A stretch of DNA of 64,000 nucleotides, taken from the NCBI GenBank assembly GCA_002104905.1, contig MCFE01000026.1:1-64000 (forward strand). The letters run 5' to 3'. The position numbers and the translations under genes were made by a program. Positions within the stretch are counted from its first letter, which is position 1. Every line of letters begins with the position of its first letter. The notes under the pieces were generated by a model, which saw only the letters and a program-made list of their open reading frames with translations, was not told the origin of the DNA and searched no databases. Below are positions 1,458-17,907 of this stretch, piece by piece. The stretch comes from Basidiobolus meristosporus CBS 931.73 (Eukaryota; Fungi; Basidiobolomycota).

Positions 1458-1807
1458 TGTTGTAAAAATTCGTATTTTCCACCTAAATATTCACCTAACT
1501 TAGTCACTTAGATCATCACCTTCAAATCCTAGAGAATACTGACCAAATTCCTTGTCGGGATTTACTTAGAATATTTTCACCAAAATACCAGGTACCCAGA
1601 ACATGAAAATTCTCAAAGTTGTCCAAACAGCCCCAAACTTTGCACACATGTTCTTGGGACCTTCCTTAACCTATTCTACGTGTTTGTAATGCCAAGACCA
1701 TGTAAAAGTATAAATACTACTTTTACATTCAATAAATCATTAAGTGAAAACCACATAATCTACTTGTTCTCCAAATCACTTCCAATATCTCCAAGACTCT
1801 TACAACA
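1458..1807 (+). repeat. 5' LTR (350 bp)
   Basis: Direct repeat of 5795-6144. The only difference seen by eye is A1489 vs G5826. Contains TATAAAT (1709-1715) and AATAAA (1731-1736). Confidence 0.98.
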
Positions 1808-1819
1808 GGTTATGAGCCC
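1808..1819 (+). promoter_or_regulatory. Primer-binding site complementary to the anticodon arm of initiator tRNA-Met (half-tRNA priming, Ty5/copia type)
   Basis: GGTTATGAGCCC abuts the LTR end. It is the complement of GGGCUCAUAACC in the fungal tRNAi-Met anticodon stem-loop. Confidence 0.9.
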
Positions 1820-4800
1820 CGAGCTGTCACTCTCTGCAATGTCTACTACTGCTATTACTGGAATTTTTCCCTCTGCTGAAAAGTTGGATGGATCTAACTA
1901 CCAAGTGTGGAAGGTGAAGATGAAGATGCTGCTACAAGAAAGAGGCCTTTGGGATATTGTCATGGGAGAAGAATGCCCTCCTAAAAACGTGGGAGAGGAA
2001 GCCTTGAAGTACCAGAAGAAAGAACAAAGTGCCTTTAACTGCATTTGCCTTAATGTCAAGGACAAATTGCTAATTCAATGCTCAAGAGCAAAAACGGCAA
2101 AGAATGCCTGGAAAGCATTAGAAGACACCTACCAGTCATGTTCAGCTGCCAAGAAAATGTATCTGAGAAGAAAATTCTTTACTACAAAGATGCTGCCAGG
2201 AGAAGAAATGAAAAATCTAATTAACAGAATTACCCTGCTGGTAGATGAGATGGAATCTGTGGGCGTACCAACTACTGATGAGGATGTGATAGTTACCATC
2301 CTGAATAGCCTGACAGACGAGTTTCAGGGCCTTGTATCAGCCCTAGAGTCCAGAACTGAAGATTTGACCTTAAATTACGTATATGGAAGGCTCCTGGATG
2401 AAGAATTAAGAAAATCAAGCGCCAATAAGAAGGAAGAAGAAAATGCTTTAATAAGCAATGATAACCAACAAAGGAGGTACCCAAGACCCTACAAAGGCAA
2501 CAGCAACCTATTTTGCAACTACTGCAAAAGGAAAGGACACACATCAGACCGATGTTTCAAAAAGAGAGATTATCAGCAAAAGAAGCCTGAATATGGAAAT
2601 GCTGCAACAACTGAAGATAGACTATTCATATCTGCACTAAATATGACCACAAACAAGGATTCTCAGACGTGGTATATTGACTCTGGAGCTTCTCAACACT
2701 TTACACACCAAAAAGAACTTTTTACCCAATATCAAGAAATTCCAATTAAGAAGGTTTTCATGGGTGACGATAGAACACTTGATGCAGTGGGAGAAGGAAC
2801 TATCCAAGTAAACCTTAGAAGCAGTGAAGGAAGCCATACACTGACCTTTAAAGAAGTACTCTATGTACCAGAAATAGCCAAGAACCTACTCTCTGTAAGC
2901 AAGGCCACAGCAGAAGGACTCAGTTTCAGTTTTGACAATTCTGGATGCAGGATCACTGATCAAAATGGTGCCCATATTGCTTCGGGCATCAGAGATCAGA
3001 ACCTATACAAGTTGACTTATATTCCATCATATCTGGAAGCCAATATAAGTAACTTAAATGAAGAAACACCAATGCTTTGGCACAGGAGATTTGGACACAT
3101 CAATTTTGATTATTTGCGTAAAATGATCAAAGATCAGCTAATTTCTGGAGTGAAAATTGATCCCCCAGCTATTTTGGAGCACTGTGAAGCCTGCATATAT
3201 GGGAAACAAGCCAGACAACCGTTCAAGAGCTCTGGGTTAATCAAAACTAAGAAAAAATTAGATCTAATTCACTCAGATCTGTGTGGACCTATGCAAAATT
3301 TATCCTTAGGCGGGATGAAGTATTTAATCACTTTTATTGATGATTATACAAGATACACATGGGTCTACTTCATGGAGAGAAAGGAAGAAGCTCTGTCTAA
3401 GCTCAGGGAGTTCAAAGCCATGGTGGAGAGAGAAACTGGTGAAAAAATCAAGAAAATACGCTCTGACAATGGTGGAGAATATACCTCAAAACTCTTCATC
3501 CACTTCTGCAAAATTCATGGGATAAAGCAAGAGACTACTGTACCATACTCCCCACAGCAAAATGGAGTAGCAGAACGAGCTAACAGATCAATAATTGATA
3601 TGGCAAGATCTATGATCCATGATCAAAAATTATCCTATGATTTTTGGGCGGAATCAGTTGCCACTGCTGTATATCTTAAAAATAGGAGTTATAACAGAAT
3701 ACTTCGTGATTCTACTCCATTTGAAGCATGGTATGGATACAGACCAAGTGCAGAACATCTAAGAATATTTGGGTGTACAGCATATGCCAAAAAACTGGCC
3801 GGAAATCAGTCAAAATTTGAGCCAAAAAGTGTAAAATGCATATTTTTGGGCTACTGCAATGAGAGTAAGGCATACAGACTCTACAATACCGAAGCAAAGA
3901 AGCTGATCAAGTCCAGGGATGTGTTGTTTGATGAAAATTCAAAATTTTCACAAAAAATGACATCAGATGATGACGAAAATTTGATCTCAAGTCCACCAAT
4001 TGTCAGGATTGAATCAGAGCAAAACAATGAAAATTTTTTCACTCCAGAGGACTCTACAACCGTGGTTCAGCCAGAATCAGTGCCCAGGAATATCCCAGAA
4101 GTGATCATTCCAGTATCAAATGCCCGGAGATCCAATCGGACAAGAAATAGCCCAAATTACTATATCAATGAGGGTACAAACTTAGCCTATGCCTATTCAG
4201 TCCATGTTGATGAACCCCAGACTGTAAAAGAGGCCCTAAATAGTCCTCAGACGAAGTTTTGGAGATCTGCAATGACTGAGGAATATCAGGCACTGATGGA
4301 AAATCAAACTTGGGACTTAGTCAAATTACCAATCAACCGAAAATCAATTGGATGCAGATGGGTCTTCAAGACAAAATACAAGGCTGATGGTACAATTGAA
4401 AGATACAAAGCAAGACTTGTAGCCAAAGGATACTCTCAAACAAAAGGACTTGACTATACTGAGACCTTTGCACCGGTAGCCAAGTTTAATTCCATCAGAT
4501 TAATATTGGCTATTGCAGCCAAATATAAGTTTTTTATTCATCAAATGGATGTAAAAACTGCATTTTTGAATGGAGAACTTGATGAGGACGTGTATATGGA
4601 CCAGCCTGATGGGTTTGTTGACCAAGATAACCCCCATTTGGTCTGCAAGCTTAAAAAGTCACTATATGGTCTCAAACAATCACCAAGAGCCTGGAATTGC
4701 AAGATAGATTCTTATTTGGAATCTTTGAGTTTCAAAAGGAGTAATGCTGACTATAGTATATACTATAAGCCAGATAGAGCAAATCCGGTTCTATTAGCTC

Positions 4801-5783
4801 TATATGTGGATGATCTTATTATAGCCGCCAATAACCTAGAAACATTGGAAGAGACTAAATCCAGCCTATCTAAGGAGTTCAAGATGTCCGATCTAGGAGA
4901 ACTTAGTTACTACTTAGGGATTAAGTTCTCCATAGACAGAAGTACCCAGACTATTACCCTAAGCCAATCCAAGTATATTCAAGATATACTAAAGAAGTAC
5001 AAAATGGAAGACTGCAAACCGGCAGCTACCCCAATGGAGACAAACCTTCACTTGGTCAAAACTCAACCAAATCAAGAGAGCTTGGTGCCATCTGAAAGCC
5101 CTGACTTTCCTTATCAATCTATGGTCGGCAGTCTGATGTATATCATGCTTGGAACATGTCCAGATATCTCATATTCAGTGGGAGTTGTCAGCCAACATAA
5201 TCAGAATTATGGATCTGATCATATTGCAGCAGTTAAGCGGATTTTTAGATACCTAAAAGGAACTGCTGATATCTGCTTAAGATACACTTATAAGGATTCA
5301 GAACAGGATCTTGTGGGATACTCTGATGCTGATTGGGGACGAAATTTAGAAGACAGAAGATCCACCACAGGATATACCTTTCTTTACTGTAAAGGAGCCA
5401 TTTCATGGAACTCAAGAAAGCAACCAACCGTAGCACTTTCTACTACAGAGGCAGAGTATATGGCAGCCTGTGAAGCTACAAAAGAAGCAATGTGGTTAAG
5501 AAAGCTCTTTACAGATTTAGGCCTATGTCAAAAAACGCCTATTACTTTATTTCAAGATAATCAAGGATGTATACAATTAGGTAGAAATCCAACTTTTCAT
5601 GCTAGAACCAAGCACATAGATATTAGACATCATTTCATACGTGAAGCTATAGAGAATAACTTAGTTAGCTTAGTTTACTGTCCTACAGATGAAATGATTG
5701 CAGACATATTTACCAAACCATTAGCTAGAGACAAGTTTGAATATCTTAGGTCAAAATTAGGACTAGTCAGTATGAACATTTAG
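1812..5783 (+). CDS. Copia gag-pol polyprotein. True start is likely ATG 1812 or 1839, not the ORF-track start inside the LTR.
   Basis: Zn knuckle CNYCKRKGHTSDRC; protease IDSGAS; integrase HHCC plus HSDLCGP/SDNGGEY/NGVAER; RT QMDVKTAFLNG/YVDD; RNase H GYSDADW/TEAEY/QDNQG/ADIFTK. Confidence 0.97.
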   Translation: MSPELSLSAMSTTAITGIFPSAEKLDGSNYQVWKVKMKMLLQERGLWDIVMGEECPPKNVGEEALKYQKKEQSAFNCICLNVKDKLLIQCSRAKTAKNAWKALEDTYQSCSAAKKMYLRRKFFTTKMLPGEEMKNLINRITLLVDEMESVGVPTTDEDVIVTILNSLTDEFQGLVSALESRTEDLTLNYVYGRLLDEELRKSSANKKEEENALISNDNQQRRYPRPYKGNSNLFCNYCKRKGHTSDRCFKKRDYQQKKPEYGNAATTEDRLFISALNMTTNKDSQTWYIDSGASQHFTHQKELFTQYQEIPIKKVFMGDDRTLDAVGEGTIQVNLRSSEGSHTLTFKEVLYVPEIAKNLLSVSKATAEGLSFSFDNSGCRITDQNGAHIASGIRDQNLYKLTYIPSYLEANISNLNEETPMLWHRRFGHINFDYLRKMIKDQLISGVKIDPPAILEHCEACIYGKQARQPFKSSGLIKTKKKLDLIHSDLCGPMQNLSLGGMKYLITFIDDYTRYTWVYFMERKEEALSKLREFKAMVERETGEKIKKIRSDNGGEYTSKLFIHFCKIHGIKQETTVPYSPQQNGVAERANRSIIDMARSMIHDQKLSYDFWAESVATAVYLKNRSYNRILRDSTPFEAWYGYRPSAEHLRIFGCTAYAKKLAGNQSKFEPKSVKCIFLGYCNESKAYRLYNTEAKKLIKSRDVLFDENSKFSQKMTSDDDENLISSPPIVRIESEQNNENFFTPEDSTTVVQPESVPRNIPEVIIPVSNARRSNRTRNSPNYYINEGTNLAYAYSVHVDEPQTVKEALNSPQTKFWRSAMTEEYQALMENQTWDLVKLPINRKSIGCRWVFKTKYKADGTIERYKARLVAKGYSQTKGLDYTETFAPVAKFNSIRLILAIAAKYKFFIHQMDVKTAFLNGELDEDVYMDQPDGFVDQDNPHLVCKLKKSLYGLKQSPRAWNCKIDSYLESLSFKRSNADYSIYYKPDRANPVLLALYVDDLIIAANNLETLEETKSSLSKEFKMSDLGELSYYLGIKFSIDRSTQTITLSQSKYIQDILKKYKMEDCKPAATPMETNLHLVKTQPNQESLVPSESPDFPYQSMVGSLMYIMLGTCPDISYSVGVVSQHNQNYGSDHIAAVKRIFRYLKGTADICLRYTYKDSEQDLVGYSDADWGRNLEDRRSTTGYTFLYCKGAISWNSRKQPTVALSTTEAEYMAACEATKEAMWLRKLFTDLGLCQKTPITLFQDNQGCIQLGRNPTFHARTKHIDIRHHFIREAIENNLVSLVYCPTDEMIADIFTKPLARDKFEYLRSKLGLVSMNI

Positions 5784-5785
5784 CT

Positions 5786-5794
5786 GAGTGGGAG
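5786..5794 (+). promoter_or_regulatory. Polypurine tract (plus-strand primer)
   Basis: GAGTGGGAG immediately upstream of the 3' LTR. Confidence 0.8.
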
Positions 5795-6144
5795 TGTTGT
5801 AAAAATTCGTATTTTCCACCTAAATGTTCACCTAACTTAGTCACTTAGATCATCACCTTCAAATCCTAGAGAATACTGACCAAATTCCTTGTCGGGATTT
5901 ACTTAGAATATTTTCACCAAAATACCAGGTACCCAGAACATGAAAATTCTCAAAGTTGTCCAAACAGCCCCAAACTTTGCACACATGTTCTTGGGACCTT
6001 CCTTAACCTATTCTACGTGTTTGTAATGCCAAGACCATGTAAAAGTATAAATACTACTTTTACATTCAATAAATCATTAAGTGAAAACCACATAATCTAC
6101 TTGTTCTCCAAATCACTTCCAATATCTCCAAGACTCTTACAACA
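5795..6144 (+). repeat. 3' LTR (350 bp)
   Basis: Direct repeat of 1458-1807, with TG...CA ends and an 8-bp terminal inverted repeat. Confidence 0.98.
6068..6073 (+). terminator. Candidate polyadenylation signal in the 3' LTR
   Basis: AATAAA downstream of the LTR TATA element, at the expected R-region position. Confidence 0.55.
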
Positions 6145-9290: not shown

Positions 9291-9770
9291 TTAGCTATTA
9301 CAATACCCAGCCAATGCCAGTACTACCAAGGTACTCACAAGTGCATTAGCTTGGTTCCAGTTCGCTCCATTGGCATGGTTATTGTTGTTGCTATTGTTGG
9401 GGGTGGTTTGAGGGTTGGGGTTTGCCGCCGGGGTATTCGTGGCCGCTGGTACAGGTGTAGCCGCTGGCTGTTGAGGCTCGTTGCCTGCATTGTTTCCTCC
9501 GCCATCGCCTGGTTGACTCGGGGGCTGCTGGTTGTTGGGTTGACCAGCGTCTCCATTATTCCCATTCCCGTTCCCGTTCCCGGTGCTGCTACCCCCGCCT
9601 GAGCCATTCCCGCAGAATGAAGGCCCCACTCCACAGAATCCCCACTGTGAGCAGCAGGACCCGGCTGGGCACTCGACTCCATTCCCGCATCTGCCATCAA
9701 CACTCAGCGCCGCCTGGCTGGCTGAGATCCCGCATGTAACTAAAAGAGTCAGGATAATGGAGAATCTCAT
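9291..9770 (-). CDS. Secreted hevein/CBM18 chitin-binding protein, likely GPI-anchored (copy A)
   Basis: Signal peptide; CGNGVECPAGSCCSQWGFCGVGPSFC (6-Cys hevein core); G/N/P/Q-rich stalk; hydrophobic C-terminus. Confidence 0.9.
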   Translation of the reverse strand: MRFSIILTLLVTCGISASQAALSVDGRCGNGVECPAGSCCSQWGFCGVGPSFCGNGSGGGSSTGNGNGNGNNGDAGQPNNQQPPSQPGDGGGNNAGNEPQQPAATPVPAATNTPAANPNPQTTPNNSNNNNHANGANWNQANALVSTLVVLALAGYCNS

Positions 9771-10195
9771 TGTTACTTCAAGTGGACTAATATGAGTTTG
9801 TACGAGGATTCACTCCGTTTGCTTGGTGTGGTTTTGCCGCTGCTTTGCTGGTTTTCTTGATTTCGCGTATCTCGAGGATGATCACTGCTTGCTGGTTGTC
9901 AAGGATCGCTTCTGTTTCTCTTTGGATTTGACTTGTACGAAAGGTCTCTAGGGAAGGTCTCTCGATTGTTGGCTTGTTGGTGTTCAGTTACTCACATCCT
10001 CTGGTATTTTATATCAACTCACATCCCCTGGTATTCTGTATCAATGCTCACTCGAGTCATCCCAAGAGTGTGGCAGTCATCTTCCTTGACATCATCCGTT
10101 TATGCATAAAGAAGATCACGTAGAATGGCCAAGCTATTAAGCATGAGAATACGTTCATGACATTGCATAGTGCTTATTCTAATTCGCTGTAGAGG
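9347..10195. repeat. Left arm of 849-bp inverted repeat
   Basis: Reverse complement of 11112-11960 with no indels (paired coordinates sum to 21307). One mismatch seen (10181/11126). Confidence 0.97.
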
Positions 10196-10436
10196 CATCA
10201 ATGATTCATCAGATTGGGATGATTACTGATTTATGAAATCATCGCAAATATGCAGCGATTATACTAGTCAAATATATTTCATACAACTAAGTCTCCCGTT
10301 TCCCAGCTTCCAATATTTGTGGAGCCTATAGTAAAGCGCACAGAACAGCAATTAGTATAACGGATTATTAACGTGGTTTATTCGATCAACTCGCGCTCAT
10401 CTATGAAAAGTACATCTATTCTATTGAATACATTGA

Positions 10437-10841
10437 TTACTGCAGAAGATTCCTGGCTGCTAAGAGAAGCGCACTGGTAAAAATTATACTTGGTGTACTG
10501 CGCATGCCTTGATTGGCTACTGTATTGTTAGGATTTGGTACCCCACTGTTTACCGGATAGTTTGTAGCACTTGGATGCGCTACCACTTGAGAGGAAGTTG
10601 CTCCAATGGCAGTTTGTGAGGGTTGGCCGTTTGTGGTAACTGCAAGTGCTGGAATGCTGGAATGTTGGGCATTGCAGAAGCCTTCACCAGCTCCACAGAA
10701 TCCCCAGGGAGAGCAGCATGATCCAGCTGGGCATTCGATTCCATTTCCACATGTTCCATCGACACTCAAAACACTTGCTGCGGGCTTTATGAGATATGAA
10801 GCAAAGGTAAGAATGGAGAAGGCAGCAATGGCAAATCGCAT
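10437..10841 (-). CDS. Third, diverged hevein/CBM18 secreted protein in the IR spacer, likely GPI-anchored
   Basis: Signal peptide; VDGTCGNGIECPAGSCCSPWGFCGAGEGFC; S/T/P stalk; hydrophobic C-terminus; TATA-like element near 10903-10910 on the minus strand. Confidence 0.88.
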   Translation of the reverse strand: MRFAIAAFSILTFASYLIKPAASVLSVDGTCGNGIECPAGSCCSPWGFCGAGEGFCNAQHSSIPALAVTTNGQPSQTAIGATSSQVVAHPSATNYPVNSGVPNPNNTVANQGMRSTPSIIFTSALLLAARNLLQ

Positions 10842-11111
10842 GATAGTATTAGAGAATTAGAATGTTAGGGGTTAATGGTGGCTTCTGGCTCTAAAATTTG
10901 CACTTATATACATAGCAACATGAAATTTTCCGTAAGCGAAAACTGTAGATTGTCTTCACTATTTTGCCATTTACATTTTGAATTGTTTAAGCAACATCAG
11001 GAAGTTATACTGCATTCAATAAAATATCCGATTATGTTCAGTCATATCATAATAGCATTTGTATGACTCCTAGCTTTTAATCTTTTGGTTGGCTAATTCA
11101 AGCGATTGGTA

Positions 11112-11960
11112 CCTCTACAGCGAATCAGAATAAGCACTATGCAATGTCATGAACGTATTCTCATGCTTAATAGCTTGGCCATTCTACGTGATCTTCTTTA
11201 TGCATAAACGGATGATGTCAAGGAAGATGACTGCCACACTCTTGGGATGACTCGAGTGAGCATTGATACAGAATACCAGGGGATGTGAGTTGATATAAAA
11301 TACCAGAGGATGTGAGTAACTGAACACCAACAAGCCAACAATCGAGAGACCTTCCCTAGAGACCTTTCGTACAAGTCAAATCCAAAGAGAAACAGAAGCG
11401 ATCCTTGACAACCAGCAAGCAGTGATCATCCTCGAGATACGCGAAATCAAGAAAACCAGCAAAGCAGCGGCAAAACCACACCAAGCAAACGGAGTGAATC
11501 CTCGTACAAACTCATATTAGTCCACTTGAAGTAACAATGAGATTCTCCATTATCCTGACTCTTTTAGTTACATGCGGGATCTCAGCCAGCCAGGCGGCGC
11601 TGAGTGTTGATGGCAGATGCGGGAATGGAGTCGAGTGCCCAGCCGGGTCCTGCTGCTCACAGTGGGGATTCTGTGGAGTGGGGCCTTCATTCTGCGGGAA
11701 TGGCTCAGGCGGGGGTAGCAGCACCGGGAACGGGAACGGGAATGGGAATAATGGAGACGCTGGTCAACCCAACAACCAGCAGCCCCCGAGTCAACCAGGC
11801 GATGGCGGAGGAAACAATGCAGGCAACGAGCCTCAACAGCCAGCGGCTACACCTGTACCAGCGGCCACGAATACCCCGGCGGCAAACCCCAACCCTCAAA
11901 CCACCCCCAACAATAGCAACAACAATAACCATGCCAATGGAGCGAACTGGAACCAAGCTA
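11112..11960. repeat. Right arm of 849-bp inverted repeat
   Basis: Reverse complement of 9347-10195. Covers about 425 bp of promoter/leader and most of the CBM18 CDS. Confidence 0.97.
11294..11300 (+). promoter_or_regulatory. Candidate TATA box of CBM18 copy B (mirror at 10007-10013 for copy A)
   Basis: TATAAAA followed by an AUG-free leader running to ATG 11537. Confidence 0.6.
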
Positions 11961-12022
11961 GTACACCTGTGAATGTCTTGGTAGGCATGGCTATGGCAGT
12001 ATATTTGTATCAGTTGATGTAA
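11537..12022 (+). CDS. Secreted hevein/CBM18 chitin-binding protein, likely GPI-anchored (copy B)
   Basis: Protein identical to copy A through ...NWNQA, then a different hydrophobic tail (STPVNVLVGMAMAVYLYQLM). Confidence 0.9.
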   Translation: MRFSIILTLLVTCGISASQAALSVDGRCGNGVECPAGSCCSQWGFCGVGPSFCGNGSGGGSSTGNGNGNGNNGDAGQPNNQQPPSQPGDGGGNNAGNEPQQPAATPVPAATNTPAANPNPQTTPNNSNNNNHANGANWNQASTPVNVLVGMAMAVYLYQLM

Positions 12023-12048: not shown

Positions 12049-12723
12049 TTACGCAGAAAAATGCAATAATGATCTATTTGATTTATTGATGGTGCTTTTG
12101 GTTTTTGATAGTGTAGAATTGCTACCCAAATTCTCCAAGATAATATTGATTTTCTGGTTGAACAAGGCAGATGTATCCGTATGAATTTGGATTTTTTCCA
12201 GCATATCTTGGAAGATAGTTGATGAATTATCCAGACTTGTGTGATTAAGATTTACCAACTCTCCGCCTTGCTCCAAGCTGTTCTTGAGTCCAGATTCATA
12301 GCCGTATGCCTCGCCTGCAATCACACCCTTGGTGTATCCGGATTTTTCACCAAGCTCTATCCCTTTGTCTCTGCCATCATGGAACCCAGCCCAATAACCA
12401 TCCCTTTGCCCATGCTTTTCCCCTTTGTTGCGTCCGTGCTTTTCCCCTTCCTTCTGCCCTCTTTCCTTTCCTTTCGAGTAGCCACGGAAATAACTTTTTT
12501 CTAATCCAGCTTGGTATCCTTCAGAATAGGCACTTTTGCGACCTTCAGAATACCCCTCATCGTAATCATCCAGGGCCTGTGCTTTATCGATTGGCTTTGC
12601 AGTTGTGGGTAGCACCCCATTCGCTGTGCCTGTCATATTCAAGCTCTCAACAATGCTAGTGCCTACGACTAGTTTCTCCAACGTCGTAAAGCAGCATATC
12701 CAGGCAAAAACAAATGATCGCAT
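12049..12723 (-). CDS. Putative secreted protein with a long GxxxG (GX3) repeat; function unknown
   Basis: Intronless 224-codon ORF from ATG 12723 with TATA-like TATATA upstream; hydrophobic N-terminus; 24 tetrapeptide units; six N-glycosylation sequons. Confidence 0.75.
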   Translation of the reverse strand: MRSFVFAWICCFTTLEKLVVGTSIVESLNMTGTANGVLPTTAKPIDKAQALDDYDEGYSEGRKSAYSEGYQAGLEKSYFRGYSKGKERGQKEGEKHGRNKGEKHGQRDGYWAGFHDGRDKGIELGEKSGYTKGVIAGEAYGYESGLKNSLEQGGELVNLNHTSLDNSSTIFQDMLEKIQIHTDTSALFNQKINIILENLGSNSTLSKTKSTINKSNRSLLHFSA

Positions 12724-12937
12724 TGAGAGAGTATTTCCGAGCACGTACCCTATATATCTAATATCTCACATCTAATGAAACCTACTGTTTCAATCAATAA
12801 GAGTCTATTTTAATCCAACAGAGTAGGCAGTCCTAAATCAATGTTTCACCAAGAAATGGGACGTTGAGGAATGGTTCGGGAGATTAAATAGAAACAAGTC
12901 TTCAAAATTGGGCTATGTTTTGAAAAGCATCCTTGGA

Positions 12938-13996
12938 TTATATACTGAGAAGCATCCCGATAATGACTATGTTTAGAAGCAGAGTTGGTGCAATGTCGGG
13001 TGCTATCGATTTATCCTCAATGGCAGTGGTATTGTCGGTTAACAGCACAGGATATTTCACGGTACAATTTGCGTCAACGGAAGGAGTTTGATGATCGGCA
13101 TGTACATTCTCATCCTTGTACCACTGCTTGTCACCTAAACACTCGGGAATGGTAACAATCTTGTAGCAAGCATCCTCGACCATTTTAATGATATCTGGAG
13201 CAGCTATTATAGAGGCATAATGATCGTCATGGTGAAGCGAAAGAATCTGATGCTTCGTGGGATCGATATGTTGCAAACTCTTGGCATATACGCTTCGAAC
13301 ATGATCTGGGCTCTGATGAAGCCAATCTTCAGTATCCATATTCCAGAATACCGTCTGGTACCCCAATCCTTTCAACAACTTGAGCTGCGCCGGATTGTTG
13401 GAGCCTGAGGGAGGGCGAAAGTACCGCACACGTTTTCCGATGGCGTCGTATATGACCTCTTCAGCTTTAATCAAATCTTCTCGAACCTCATTCTCTGGGA
13501 TAGTTTTAAGCGTGGTATCAATATGGTTGTACGTGTGGGAGCCAATGTGGTGACCTTCATCGTAGGCTCTCTTTACGATAGACTTCAGGTCTGGGTTCTC
13601 CAGTGCATTTCCGATCACGAAGAAAGTAACCCGTAGTCCTTTTGCCTTGAGTGTGTCAAGTAATTGTTCGGTCAGCGCGTGTGGACCATCAACGAATGAC
13701 ATTGCGACTGTGCCGGGGATACTGCAATGACTAATGAATGTTCCGACGGGTGGAGCAGACTTCCTACTTGCTTCTGGGTGGCCATCGCATTGGAACAGAC
13801 AGTCAACCTTACAGAAGGACTCCCCTTTTCCACAGAACCCATACTTTGAACAGCAGAACCCTACCGGACATTGAACCAAAGGGGCTTGGCTACACTCACG
13901 CATCATGGGGTCAGCAGCACCTATGACTCCGCTGATCATACCCAATATGGTTACAATTGAGGCGACACGATACGAACAAGAACGAAGGAAGAGCAT
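12938..13996 (-). CDS. CBM18 plus CE4 (NodB) polysaccharide/chitin deacetylase-like protein with degenerate catalytic motifs
   Basis: Signal peptide; CPVGFCCSKYGFCG CBM18; NodB motifs SFVDGP, HTYNH, RPPSG, DTEDW, LHHD; hydrophobic C-terminus. Confidence 0.92.
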   Translation of the reverse strand: MLFLRSCSYRVASIVTILGMISGVIGAADPMMRECSQAPLVQCPVGFCCSKYGFCGKGESFCKVDCLFQCDGHPEASRKSAPPVGTFISHCSIPGTVAMSFVDGPHALTEQLLDTLKAKGLRVTFFVIGNALENPDLKSIVKRAYDEGHHIGSHTYNHIDTTLKTIPENEVREDLIKAEEVIYDAIGKRVRYFRPPSGSNNPAQLKLLKGLGYQTVFWNMDTEDWLHQSPDHVRSVYAKSLQHIDPTKHQILSLHHDDHYASIIAAPDIIKMVEDACYKIVTIPECLGDKQWYKDENVHADHQTPSVDANCTVKYPVLLTDNTTAIEDKSIAPDIAPTLLLNIVIIGMLLSI

Positions 13997-17300: not shown

Positions 17301-17907
17301 ACCTGGTTTCTCTAACGCAAATGCCTCAATGGTGGCTGTATTTTCACCTAGAGTTGGAGTTTTTCTGGCCGATTTCTTTGGTTTGGGACTTTTCGGTTGT
17401 GGTGGGGGAACAATCTCTTCATCAAATATGAGCGGTACGAAATATTGGCTGACTGGCTTACTTTTTAATCTAACAGAACGTCGCTGGGTACCAAGTGATT
17501 GATCTGATGTAGCGACATCCTTTGCCAACGGCTCTGTCGTAGCATCAACAGCGGAGGAACTCTTCAACTCTAAGGGAATGCGCTTAGGCCTACCCCTCTT
17601 TGGCTTCACCAGTTCTTCTGTGGGCTTTATTTGTTCCGAAGCACTTTCTACTTGATAAGAAGAGCAAGAATGGACTGTCAACAAGATTGTATATTGCAGC
17701 ACGAAAATGAAATGTACGGTCGAATAGATCTAGAGAAGAAATACCTTGTACTTTGCTGTCAACTGATGGTAATGTATGGGGAATCCCCTCCGAATCTACC
17801 TCCAACGGGTTTTTCGACGGGTTAAAAAACTTGGCTATATCGAGGGTTTTCATTTTCGGAGGCTTTTCATTTAGAGGGTGTTCACTGGGGAGACTCGGTG
17901 AAGACAT
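14386..17907 (-). CDS. ELG1: Elg1/ATAD5 RFC-like AAA+ subunit (PCNA unloader), multi-exon
   Basis: GGTGSCKT P-loop, GYEVFEINPGMKRSG, SLILIEEADILFEED...KRPIIITCND. Exons can be joined by GT-AG introns from ATG 17907 to TAA 14386. Confidence 0.88.

Follow-up and report, generated by a model that had tools for sequence, protein, structure and literature searches.

How do two neighbouring genes come to be identical over most of their length and clearly diverged over the remainder, with the change from one state to the other falling inside the coding sequence? This question is raised by a locus at the start of contig MCFE01000026.1 of Basidiobolus meristosporus CBS 931.73, where, within 12 kb of the contig end, two small chitin-binding protein genes occupy the arms of an inverted repeat on either side of a third. 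An earlier note on this DNA had proposed that an old gene pair was homogenised here by gene conversion or repeated recombination between the arms and had added, as a speculation, that the structure could act as a recombination-based expression switch. We considered both proposals using the 64-kb window (the whole stretch of DNA that was analysed) and the corresponding locus of the sister species Basidiobolus ranarum.

Three small CBM18 genes

Gene A (9291-9770, minus strand) encodes a protein of 159 amino acids which, from its open reading frame and a match to Pfam PF00187, consists of a signal peptide, a six-cysteine hevein-type CBM18, a linker rich in Gly, Asn, Gln and Pro, and a hydrophobic C-terminal tail resembling a GPI signal. 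The product of gene B (11537-12022, plus strand; 161 amino acids) is identical to that of A over residues 1-141 and differs from it only in the C-terminal tail, so that only the last 18-20 codons distinguish the two genes. Gene C (10437-10841, minus strand) is an intact open reading frame in the spacer, specifying a CBM18 protein of 134 amino acids with the architecture of A and B. All three score above the Pfam cut-off of 27.8 bits for PF00187 (Chitin_bind_1), at 32.5 (A), 33.8 (B) and 31.0 (C), and their alignment with the domains of wheat germ agglutinin and with the six-cysteine peptide Ac-AMP2 shows the arrangement C-x5-C-x4-CC-x5-C-x6-C and the motif SQWGFCG, the last two cysteines of the eight-cysteine hevein form being missing. 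The three proteins carry a CBM18, or hevein-type, domain, for which chitin binding is predicted.

By inspection, the hydrophobic N-terminus ends in SQA, and N134-G-A followed by a hydrophobic tail of 11-14 residues can be recognised in A, B, C and the B. ranarum ortholog. The tail of A and B is probably a GPI-attachment signal, and as such would be cleaved from the mature protein.

The public annotation of GCA_002104905.1 calls gene A. Genes B and C are absent from this gene set; exact look-ups of both retrieved no record, and no transcript evidence was found for either. Short reads or RNA-seq reads can be assigned to A or to B solely over the last 60 bases.

The inverted repeat

The left arm (9347-10195) comprises codons 1-141 of gene A (9347-9770) together with 425 bp upstream of its ATG (9771-10195), and the right arm (11112-11960) comprises 425 bp upstream of gene B (11112-11536) together with codons 1-141 of B (11537-11960). 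A base-by-base comparison along the reverse-complement diagonal shows that 848 of the 849 positions of 9347-10195 are identical to the reverse complement of 11112-11960, with no indels. The sole mismatch is at 10181/11126, and the 834 bp of 9347-10180 are perfectly identical. A repeat search returned the same pair as 901 nt at 98% identity (9302-10202 / 11105-12005), and this was the only inverted repeat of at least 100 nt in the window.

Between the arms lies a unique spacer of 916 bp (10196-11111), made up of gene C with 241 bp of 3' flank and 270 bp of 5' flank, in which the arm-to-arm match falls to chance level beyond 10202/11105. The upstream part of the left arm contains a tandem repeat of two 27-bp units (9990-10044, detected with Tandem Repeats Finder), which is mirrored in the right arm at 11263-11317; the 27-bp unit may represent a duplicated regulatory site. 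Neither a tRNA gene nor any Rfam match was found in the arms. Base composition was inspected for traces of GC-biased conversion: GC3 is 0.589, inside the window's range of 0.36 to 0.645, and upstream GC is 0.431, close to the 83rd percentile of non-coding-like windows.

A DNA transposon with terminal inverted repeats was considered and rejected, since the locus has no transposase (the spacer encodes only C) and no target-site duplication, and no further copy of the repeat was found in the window or in loci L002-L005. The outer ends of the repeat fall inside homologous coding sequence, without a duplicated flank.

A step in identity inside homologous coding sequence

Directly outside the arms, the coding sequences of A and B continue in frame and colinear but diverged. 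The 3' coding tail of gene A (9302-9346, minus strand, codons 142-156) and its counterpart in gene B (11961-12005, plus strand) match at 31 of 45 positions (binomial probability about 3e-8). Among the 128,000 positions of the window, both strands included, there is no second place where either tail 45-mer matches at 27 or more of its 45 bases. Past the stop codons, the match between A and B is 28-30%, which is chance level. The proportion of differing sites thus passes from 0.1% in the core to 31% in the tails (Fisher p about 4e-21). Because mutation following a simple duplication cannot yield such a contrast, we interpret the step from core to tail as a recombination boundary. The differences in the tails mix transitions and transversions and are, for this reason, attributed to ordinary divergence and not to a mutation process directed at repeats. 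Repeat-induced point mutation as the origin of the diverged tails was rejected in view of the many transversions and of the sharpness with which the differences stop.

The inner boundary has another appearance. A transition zone (10181-10202, paired with 11105-11126) contains three mismatches in 22 bp, after which detectable homology ends; five of the seven positions following 10195 match, with a chance probability of about 0.02 by a binomial estimate. The zone is either the edge of the old duplication or microhomology at a junction. The inner end of the tract coincides with the end of detectable homology, which also fits a single one-ended event. Outside the core, only 45 + 22 bp of older homology between A and B survive, and the age of the pair is therefore read from a short stretch.

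The earlier note had described 849-bp inverted arms with one mismatch and no indels, a 916-bp spacer holding a third CBM18 gene, and colinear but diverged sequence beyond the outer boundary within both coding sequences; each of these holds. Its reading of an old gene pair homogenised by conversion over promoter and coding region is supported by the sharpness of the step in colinear coding DNA.

The syntenic locus in Basidiobolus ranarum

The outer flanks of the two arms differ, with a BAG gene on the left and a Yae1_N-like gene and a CBM18-CE4 gene on the right; a short-chain dehydrogenase is also among the neighbours. The order of the genes in the outer flanks agrees with that of a B. ranarum locus (L005), in which CE4, a small CBM18 gene and BAG follow one another. 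A search with the BAG protein recovered two B. meristosporus paralogs and two B. ranarum proteins, and of these four loci L005 alone is syntenic. Since the two outer flanks are unlike each other and keep the gene order of B. ranarum, we rejected a chimera, whether by fold-back or between haplotypes.

The one small CBM18 gene of L005 (8430-8861) is oriented towards its neighbours as gene C is here, and is 45% identical to C over the full length of C, with 79% DNA identity over 114 nt. Gene C is the ancestral resident of the locus and the ortholog of the small B. ranarum CBM18 gene. Neither A, nor B, nor the inverted repeat is present at L005, and since B. ranarum holds just the ortholog of C, A and B are lineage-specific additions that flank it. 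A word search with gene B for closer relatives carrying the pair matched A only, and a metagenome scan gave only distant CBM18 matches, at 40-54% over the domain.

Proposed gene conversion between the arms, and its alternatives

We consider it likely that the locus is a small chromosomal palindrome in which an old inverted pair, A and B, was recently homogenised by intrachromosomal gene conversion. Two older paralogs would have flanked the ancestral C head to head for long enough that their unconverted tails came to differ at 31% of sites. Very recently, one copy would have been overwritten by the other through non-allelic, arm-to-arm conversion over 849 bp, that is, over codons 1-141 together with 425 bp of upstream DNA. 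On the outer side, the converted tract would end at 9346/9347 (paired with 11960/11961), and on the inner side at or near the original duplication edge, in 10181-10202. The outcome would be two genes with a common promoter, amounting to a doubled gene dose; their mature proteins would also be the same if the tail is indeed a cleaved GPI signal. Resolution of the crossover type would occasionally invert the spacer as a by-product, and such a flip would be nearly silent.

An unlikely alternative is a single recent one-ended event in which A and its promoter were copied in inverted orientation across C. Template switching or break-induced copying, for instance, could have produced it, with one junction made by homology in the 3' end of a pre-existing diverged paralog and the other, in non-homologous DNA, by a CAAT microhomology. 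The inner boundary is abrupt, with only 4-7 bp of imperfect match past the last long identical run before matching drops to chance level, the lone mismatch among 849 bp is compatible with one very recent event, and both A and B are missing in B. ranarum. An older paralog at the position of B is nevertheless still needed to supply the 31/45 tail, and consequently this event differs from conversion only in the number of events and in the type of inner junction. The matches after 10195 also exceed chance mildly, suggesting old homology that reaches 10202. It is much less probable that the identity was created by assembly or polishing, either from arms that truly differ by a few percent or from a chimeric inverted copy, with the consensus made identical. 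The sequence comes from one assembly only and the locus is close to a contig end, but a fold-back chimera fits poorly with the unique spacer, the differing outer flanks and the synteny to B. ranarum, and cross-talk during polishing would not yield a sharp boundary beside a 31% difference. Palindromes arising from missed adapters are not known to have a unique spacer like the 916 bp seen here, which counts against an artefact. In a comparable yeast case, independent long-read assemblies agreed on the inverted-repeat sequences (PMC9731477). The B. meristosporus genome was sequenced with PacBio long reads (PMC7466969), and such reads could be long enough to span the whole 2.6-kb structure.

Two further readings assign a function to the arrangement itself. 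The expression switch imagined in the earlier note, in which a regulated or frequent flip of the spacer would alter which lectin gene meets read-through from C and so vary the wall lectins, is highly improbable. The geometry of 849-bp near-identical arms around a 916-bp spacer permits inversion by crossover, and inversions between comparable repeats are documented in yeasts. However, no recombinase gene was found among the neighbours of the element (BAG, Yae1_N-like, CBM18-CE4 and short-chain dehydrogenase), and the sole integrase, more than 3 kb from the locus, is that of a copia retrotransposon (1458-6144). From the geometry, inverting the spacer would give a mirror image of the present state over about 850 bp to either side and leave the surroundings of C unchanged. 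With identical arms, and with A and B distinguished just by a C-terminal tail that is probably cleaved off, a flip would alter almost nothing near any of the three genes. C moreover has the orientation of its B. ranarum ortholog, with no sign of a flip, and the orientations of the yeast analogue have no detectable phenotype. Even less credible is a hairpin-RNA locus, in which read-through from the convergent Yae1_N-like gene would yield antisense B, followed by C and by sense A, forming a double-stranded stem of 849 bp that could feed RNA interference against A and B. Its appeal is geometric only, the stop codon of the Yae1_N-like gene (12049) being 27 bp from that of B; the read-through would have to exceed 2.7 kb and cross three genes, and nothing in the analysis favours it.

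Relation to known inverted repeats

Conversion between inverted arms has precedents at several scales. In the palindromes of the human Y chromosome, arms more than 99.9% identical surround a unique spacer and are maintained by intrachromosomal arm-to-arm conversion. The B. meristosporus locus resembles them in its near-identical arms, its unique spacer and the presence of the arm genes in two identical copies, and differs in measuring kilobases, where the palindromes reach tens of kilobases to megabases, and in lying on a fungal contig instead of a non-recombining sex chromosome. Bacterial invertons and the FLP/FRT system of the yeast 2-micron plasmid also place inverted repeats around a flippable segment, and rely on a dedicated recombinase acting at short defined sites, with a flip that changes expression. 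The locus described here lacks a recombinase and has arms that are ordinary gene copies, and inverting its spacer would have almost no effect.

The closest known case is the flip/flop region of Saccharomyces chromosome XIV, in which 4.2-kb inverted repeats containing paralogous gene pairs (YNL018C/YNL034W and neighbours) are continually homogenised (Salzberg et al. 2022, PMC9731477). There too the enclosed segment is inverted as a by-product when crossovers are resolved, no dedicated recombinase takes part, and orientation has no known phenotype. The B. meristosporus arms are five times shorter (849 bp against 4.2 kb), enclose 0.9 kb and one gene instead of 24 kb and 15 genes, and end within coding sequence, where diverged tails remain. 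Whereas conservation across species and the presence of both orientations were demonstrated in yeast, here one genome was read and the sister species is without the pair. The long inverted repeats of Candida albicans, tied to inversions, copy-number change and loss of heterozygosity (Todd et al. 2019, PMC6591007), are likewise two-copy sequences of high identity that serve as substrates for inversion. They range from 65 bp to 6.5 kb, and open reading frames of paralogs, complete or partial, are frequent in them; their inversion-linked spacers are larger, at 3-94 kb, and a step in identity or concerted evolution was not the focus of that study. The conversion mechanism that we propose has been documented for both these C. 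albicans repeats (PMC6591007) and the Saccharomyces flip/flop repeats (PMC9731477). Copy-correction between copies is an already known process, of which this locus would be a further case.

As for the genes themselves, lectin-like CBM18 proteins were reportedly described from Batrachochytrium dendrobatidis by Abramyan and Stajich in 2012. Both fungi have small secreted hevein-type proteins in lineage-specific clusters with neighbouring CBM18-deacetylase fusions. The B. meristosporus proteins differ in having a single six-cysteine module, a low-complexity linker and a tail resembling a GPI signal, and for them a role in wall protection is only putative.

It is rather doubtful that many B. meristosporus genes lie in or between near-identical inverted repeats of 0.5-1.5 kb, with unusually active conversion and a recurrent flip-flop of the enclosed genes; if this were true, small palindromes would be a regular route to dosage doubling and structural variation in an early-diverging fungus. 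At the present locus, conversion would account for the promoter and the product common to two wall-lectin genes, and would clearly exemplify concerted evolution in a fungus of an early-diverging lineage, with a conversion tract of which both ends can be read from one sequence.

A near-perfect inverted repeat joining two small CBM18 genes

The cluster holds three small genes, A (9291-9770, minus strand, 159 aa ORF), B (11537-12022, plus strand, 161 aa ORF) and C (10437-10841, minus strand, 134 aa ORF), each of which scores above the Pfam cut-off for Chitin_bind_1 (CBM18). A and B are divergently transcribed, and C lies in the spacer of an inverted repeat, in tandem with A and divergent from B. 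In protein A the CCSQWGFCG motif is conserved in alignments with the wheat germ agglutinin hevein domains and with Ac-AMP2, a 6-Cys peptide. A, B, C and a relative from B. ranarum follow a common plan, with a hydrophobic N-terminus, a single CBM18 module, a low-complexity linker and a hydrophobic C-terminal end of 11-14 residues. Pfam searches identify the left neighbour of the cluster as a BAG-domain gene and the right neighbours as a Yae1_N-like gene followed by a CBM18-polysaccharide deacetylase gene. The Yae1_N-like ORF (12049-12744) carries many G-x-x-x-type units and is convergent with B, with 27 bp between the stops. In the public annotation of GCA_002104905.1 gene A is called, and B and C, intact ORFs with CBM18 domains, are uncalled. 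The exact protein product of A is recorded a single time, on contig MCFE01000026.1 (230,790 bp), whose opening 64 kb make up the window.

We compared the two arms base by base on the reverse-complement diagonal. The left arm (9347-10195) and the right arm (11112-11960) are identical at 848 of 849 positions with no indels, the sole mismatch (10181/11126) leaving 834 bp of perfect identity, and they enclose a spacer of 916 bp (10196-11111). On the outer side, still within the two coding sequences, the 3' tails of A (9302-9346) and B (11961-12005) match on the same diagonal at 31 of 45 positions, and past both stop codons identity is no better than chance (28-30%). At the inner edge there are three mismatches within the final 22 bp (10181, 10196 and 10198), and homology ends at 10202/11105. 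A repeat search returned the same arm pair, which is the sole inverted repeat of at least 100 nt in the 64-kb window. A coincidence between two hydrophobic tails is ruled out as the source of the tail match, both by its binomial probability (~3e-8) and by sliding each tail 45-mer over both strands of the entire window, where no other site reached at least 27/45. Arms, spacer and identity step are thus, in each element, as the earlier note had described them.

A search for RNA genes in the arms returned none. The arms do carry a tandem 27-bp unit in two copies, 89% alike (9990-10044, mirrored at 11263-11317), which sits ~220-275 bp upstream of the ATG in both A and B and may be a duplicated regulatory site. 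On L003, a piece of another B. meristosporus contig, inverted repeat copies of ~60-230 nt and 84-90% identity (12102-12455, 13198-13546 and 17533-17886) look like dispersed small MITE-like elements unrelated to the A/B palindrome.

The identity step and its possible origins

One site in 849 differs in the core, as against 14 of 45 in the colinear tails next to it (Fisher p ~4e-21); at the divergence of the tails, ~260 core differences would be expected. Since the tail differences mix transitions and transversions, they represent old divergence of the ordinary kind. A plain recent duplication whose breakpoint fell within the gene was rejected, as it would border unrelated sequence, where instead we find a 69% identical in-frame tail. 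The step, together with this in-frame homology, therefore implies that an older inverted pair pre-existed the overwriting. One copy of that A/B pair would have been overwritten by the other across 849 bp, probably by gene conversion between inverted paralogs, and the step in colinear coding DNA supports the earlier note's claim of an old pair homogenised in this way. The three inner-edge mismatches may hint at remnants of the same old divergence, in which case the whole tract would lie inside old homology. Of the seven positions after 10195, 5 match (chance ~0.02), a faint hint of such old homology; a single recent one-ended event with a microhomology junction at this edge is a possible, less likely alternative.

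Assembly artefacts were also considered. Strain CBS 931.73, isolated from gecko dung, was PacBio-sequenced (PMC7466969). Neither a fold-back chimera nor the inverted joining of two haplotypes can explain the layout, because the outer flanks differ, the spacer is unique and the gene order is shared with B. ranarum. That assembly or polishing has overstated the arm identity is very unlikely: polishing cross-talk would not be expected to leave a sharp border beside a 31% difference, and the whole structure, at 2.6 kb, could fall within the span of long reads.

An intact Ty1/copia LTR retrotransposon (1458-6144), with a 1367-aa gag-integrase-reverse transcriptase ORF carrying seven Pfam domains, lies near the contig start, ~3 kb from the lectin cluster. 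Its 350-bp LTRs have TG...CA ends and differ from each other at one site, and it is flanked by a 5-bp target-site duplication (GAGAA); the insertion is very young. By comparison with its LTRs, the arms were last homogenised as recently as this element was inserted. GC and GC3 were compared as a possible enrichment trace of long-term conversion. At 43.1%, GC in the upstream portion of the arm exceeds that of nearby intergenic pieces (31-40%) but stands only at the 83rd percentile of non-coding-like windows, and the GC3 value of 0.589 for the converted codons is within the long-ORF range of the window.

Ancestry of the cluster

A syntenic B. ranarum locus (JASJQH010000127.1, 6024-11182) carries a CBM18-deacetylase gene, a single small CBM18 gene and a BAG gene, one of the two B. 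ranarum BAG relatives, in an order matching our cluster and on one strand throughout. The deacetylases are 61% identical. Compared with C, the small gene is 45% identical at full length, and its DNA is 79% identical across 114 nt of the CBM18 module; A and B are poorer matches to it. On these comparisons the small gene is the ortholog of C, and it is annotated as a 144-aa protein. Searches of this locus found no A/B-type gene, Yae1_N-like gene or inverted repeat, and neither of the two paralogous BAG loci in B. meristosporus carries a CBM18 gene. The BAG paralogs themselves (at least three in B. meristosporus, two in B. ranarum) are diverged, at 39-47% identity, a sign of old duplications within the genus.

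As the C ortholog occurs there without A or B, C is an old resident of the cluster. Either A and B were gained on its two flanks within the B. meristosporus lineage, or B. ranarum has lost them; the Yae1_N-like gene is likewise a cluster addition or a B. ranarum loss. Relative to the genes outside it, C points the same way in B. meristosporus and B. ranarum; the spacer of this assembly is therefore in the ancestral orientation.

Consequences of the proposed homogenisation and of a possible inversion

Proteins A and B are identical over residues 1-141, with differences confined to residue 142 onwards. In both, a small-residue triplet (N134-G-A), a short spacer and the hydrophobic end resemble, under general rules for such signals, a GPI-attachment signal. 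If the tail is such a signal and is cleaved, the sole A/B difference would be removed and the mature proteins would be the same.

The earlier note had speculated that spacer flipping could act as an expression switch. We find a regulated switch unsupported and extremely unlikely: no recombinase gene is encoded near the locus and, because the arms are identical, a flip mirrors the present arrangement for ~850 bp on each side. C would still face an identical promoter and an identical stretch of 141 codons, and any differences would be confined to the 18-20 codon tail and the 3' flank that follows.

The best-studied analogue is the flip/flop region of Saccharomyces chromosome XIV, which exists in two orientations with no phenotype detected; the orientations are a by-product, ~4% of conversions resolving as crossovers (PMC9731477). 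By analogy, occasional spacer inversion in B. meristosporus is plausible as a neutral polymorphism. Many of the long inverted repeats of Candida albicans contain whole or partial ORFs and are located at inversion breakpoints (PMC6591007). The conversion proposed here has the same mechanism as in the flip/flop repeats, the C. albicans repeats and sex-chromosome palindromes. In this zoopagomycete the locus provides a small and clean new case of an already known mechanism.
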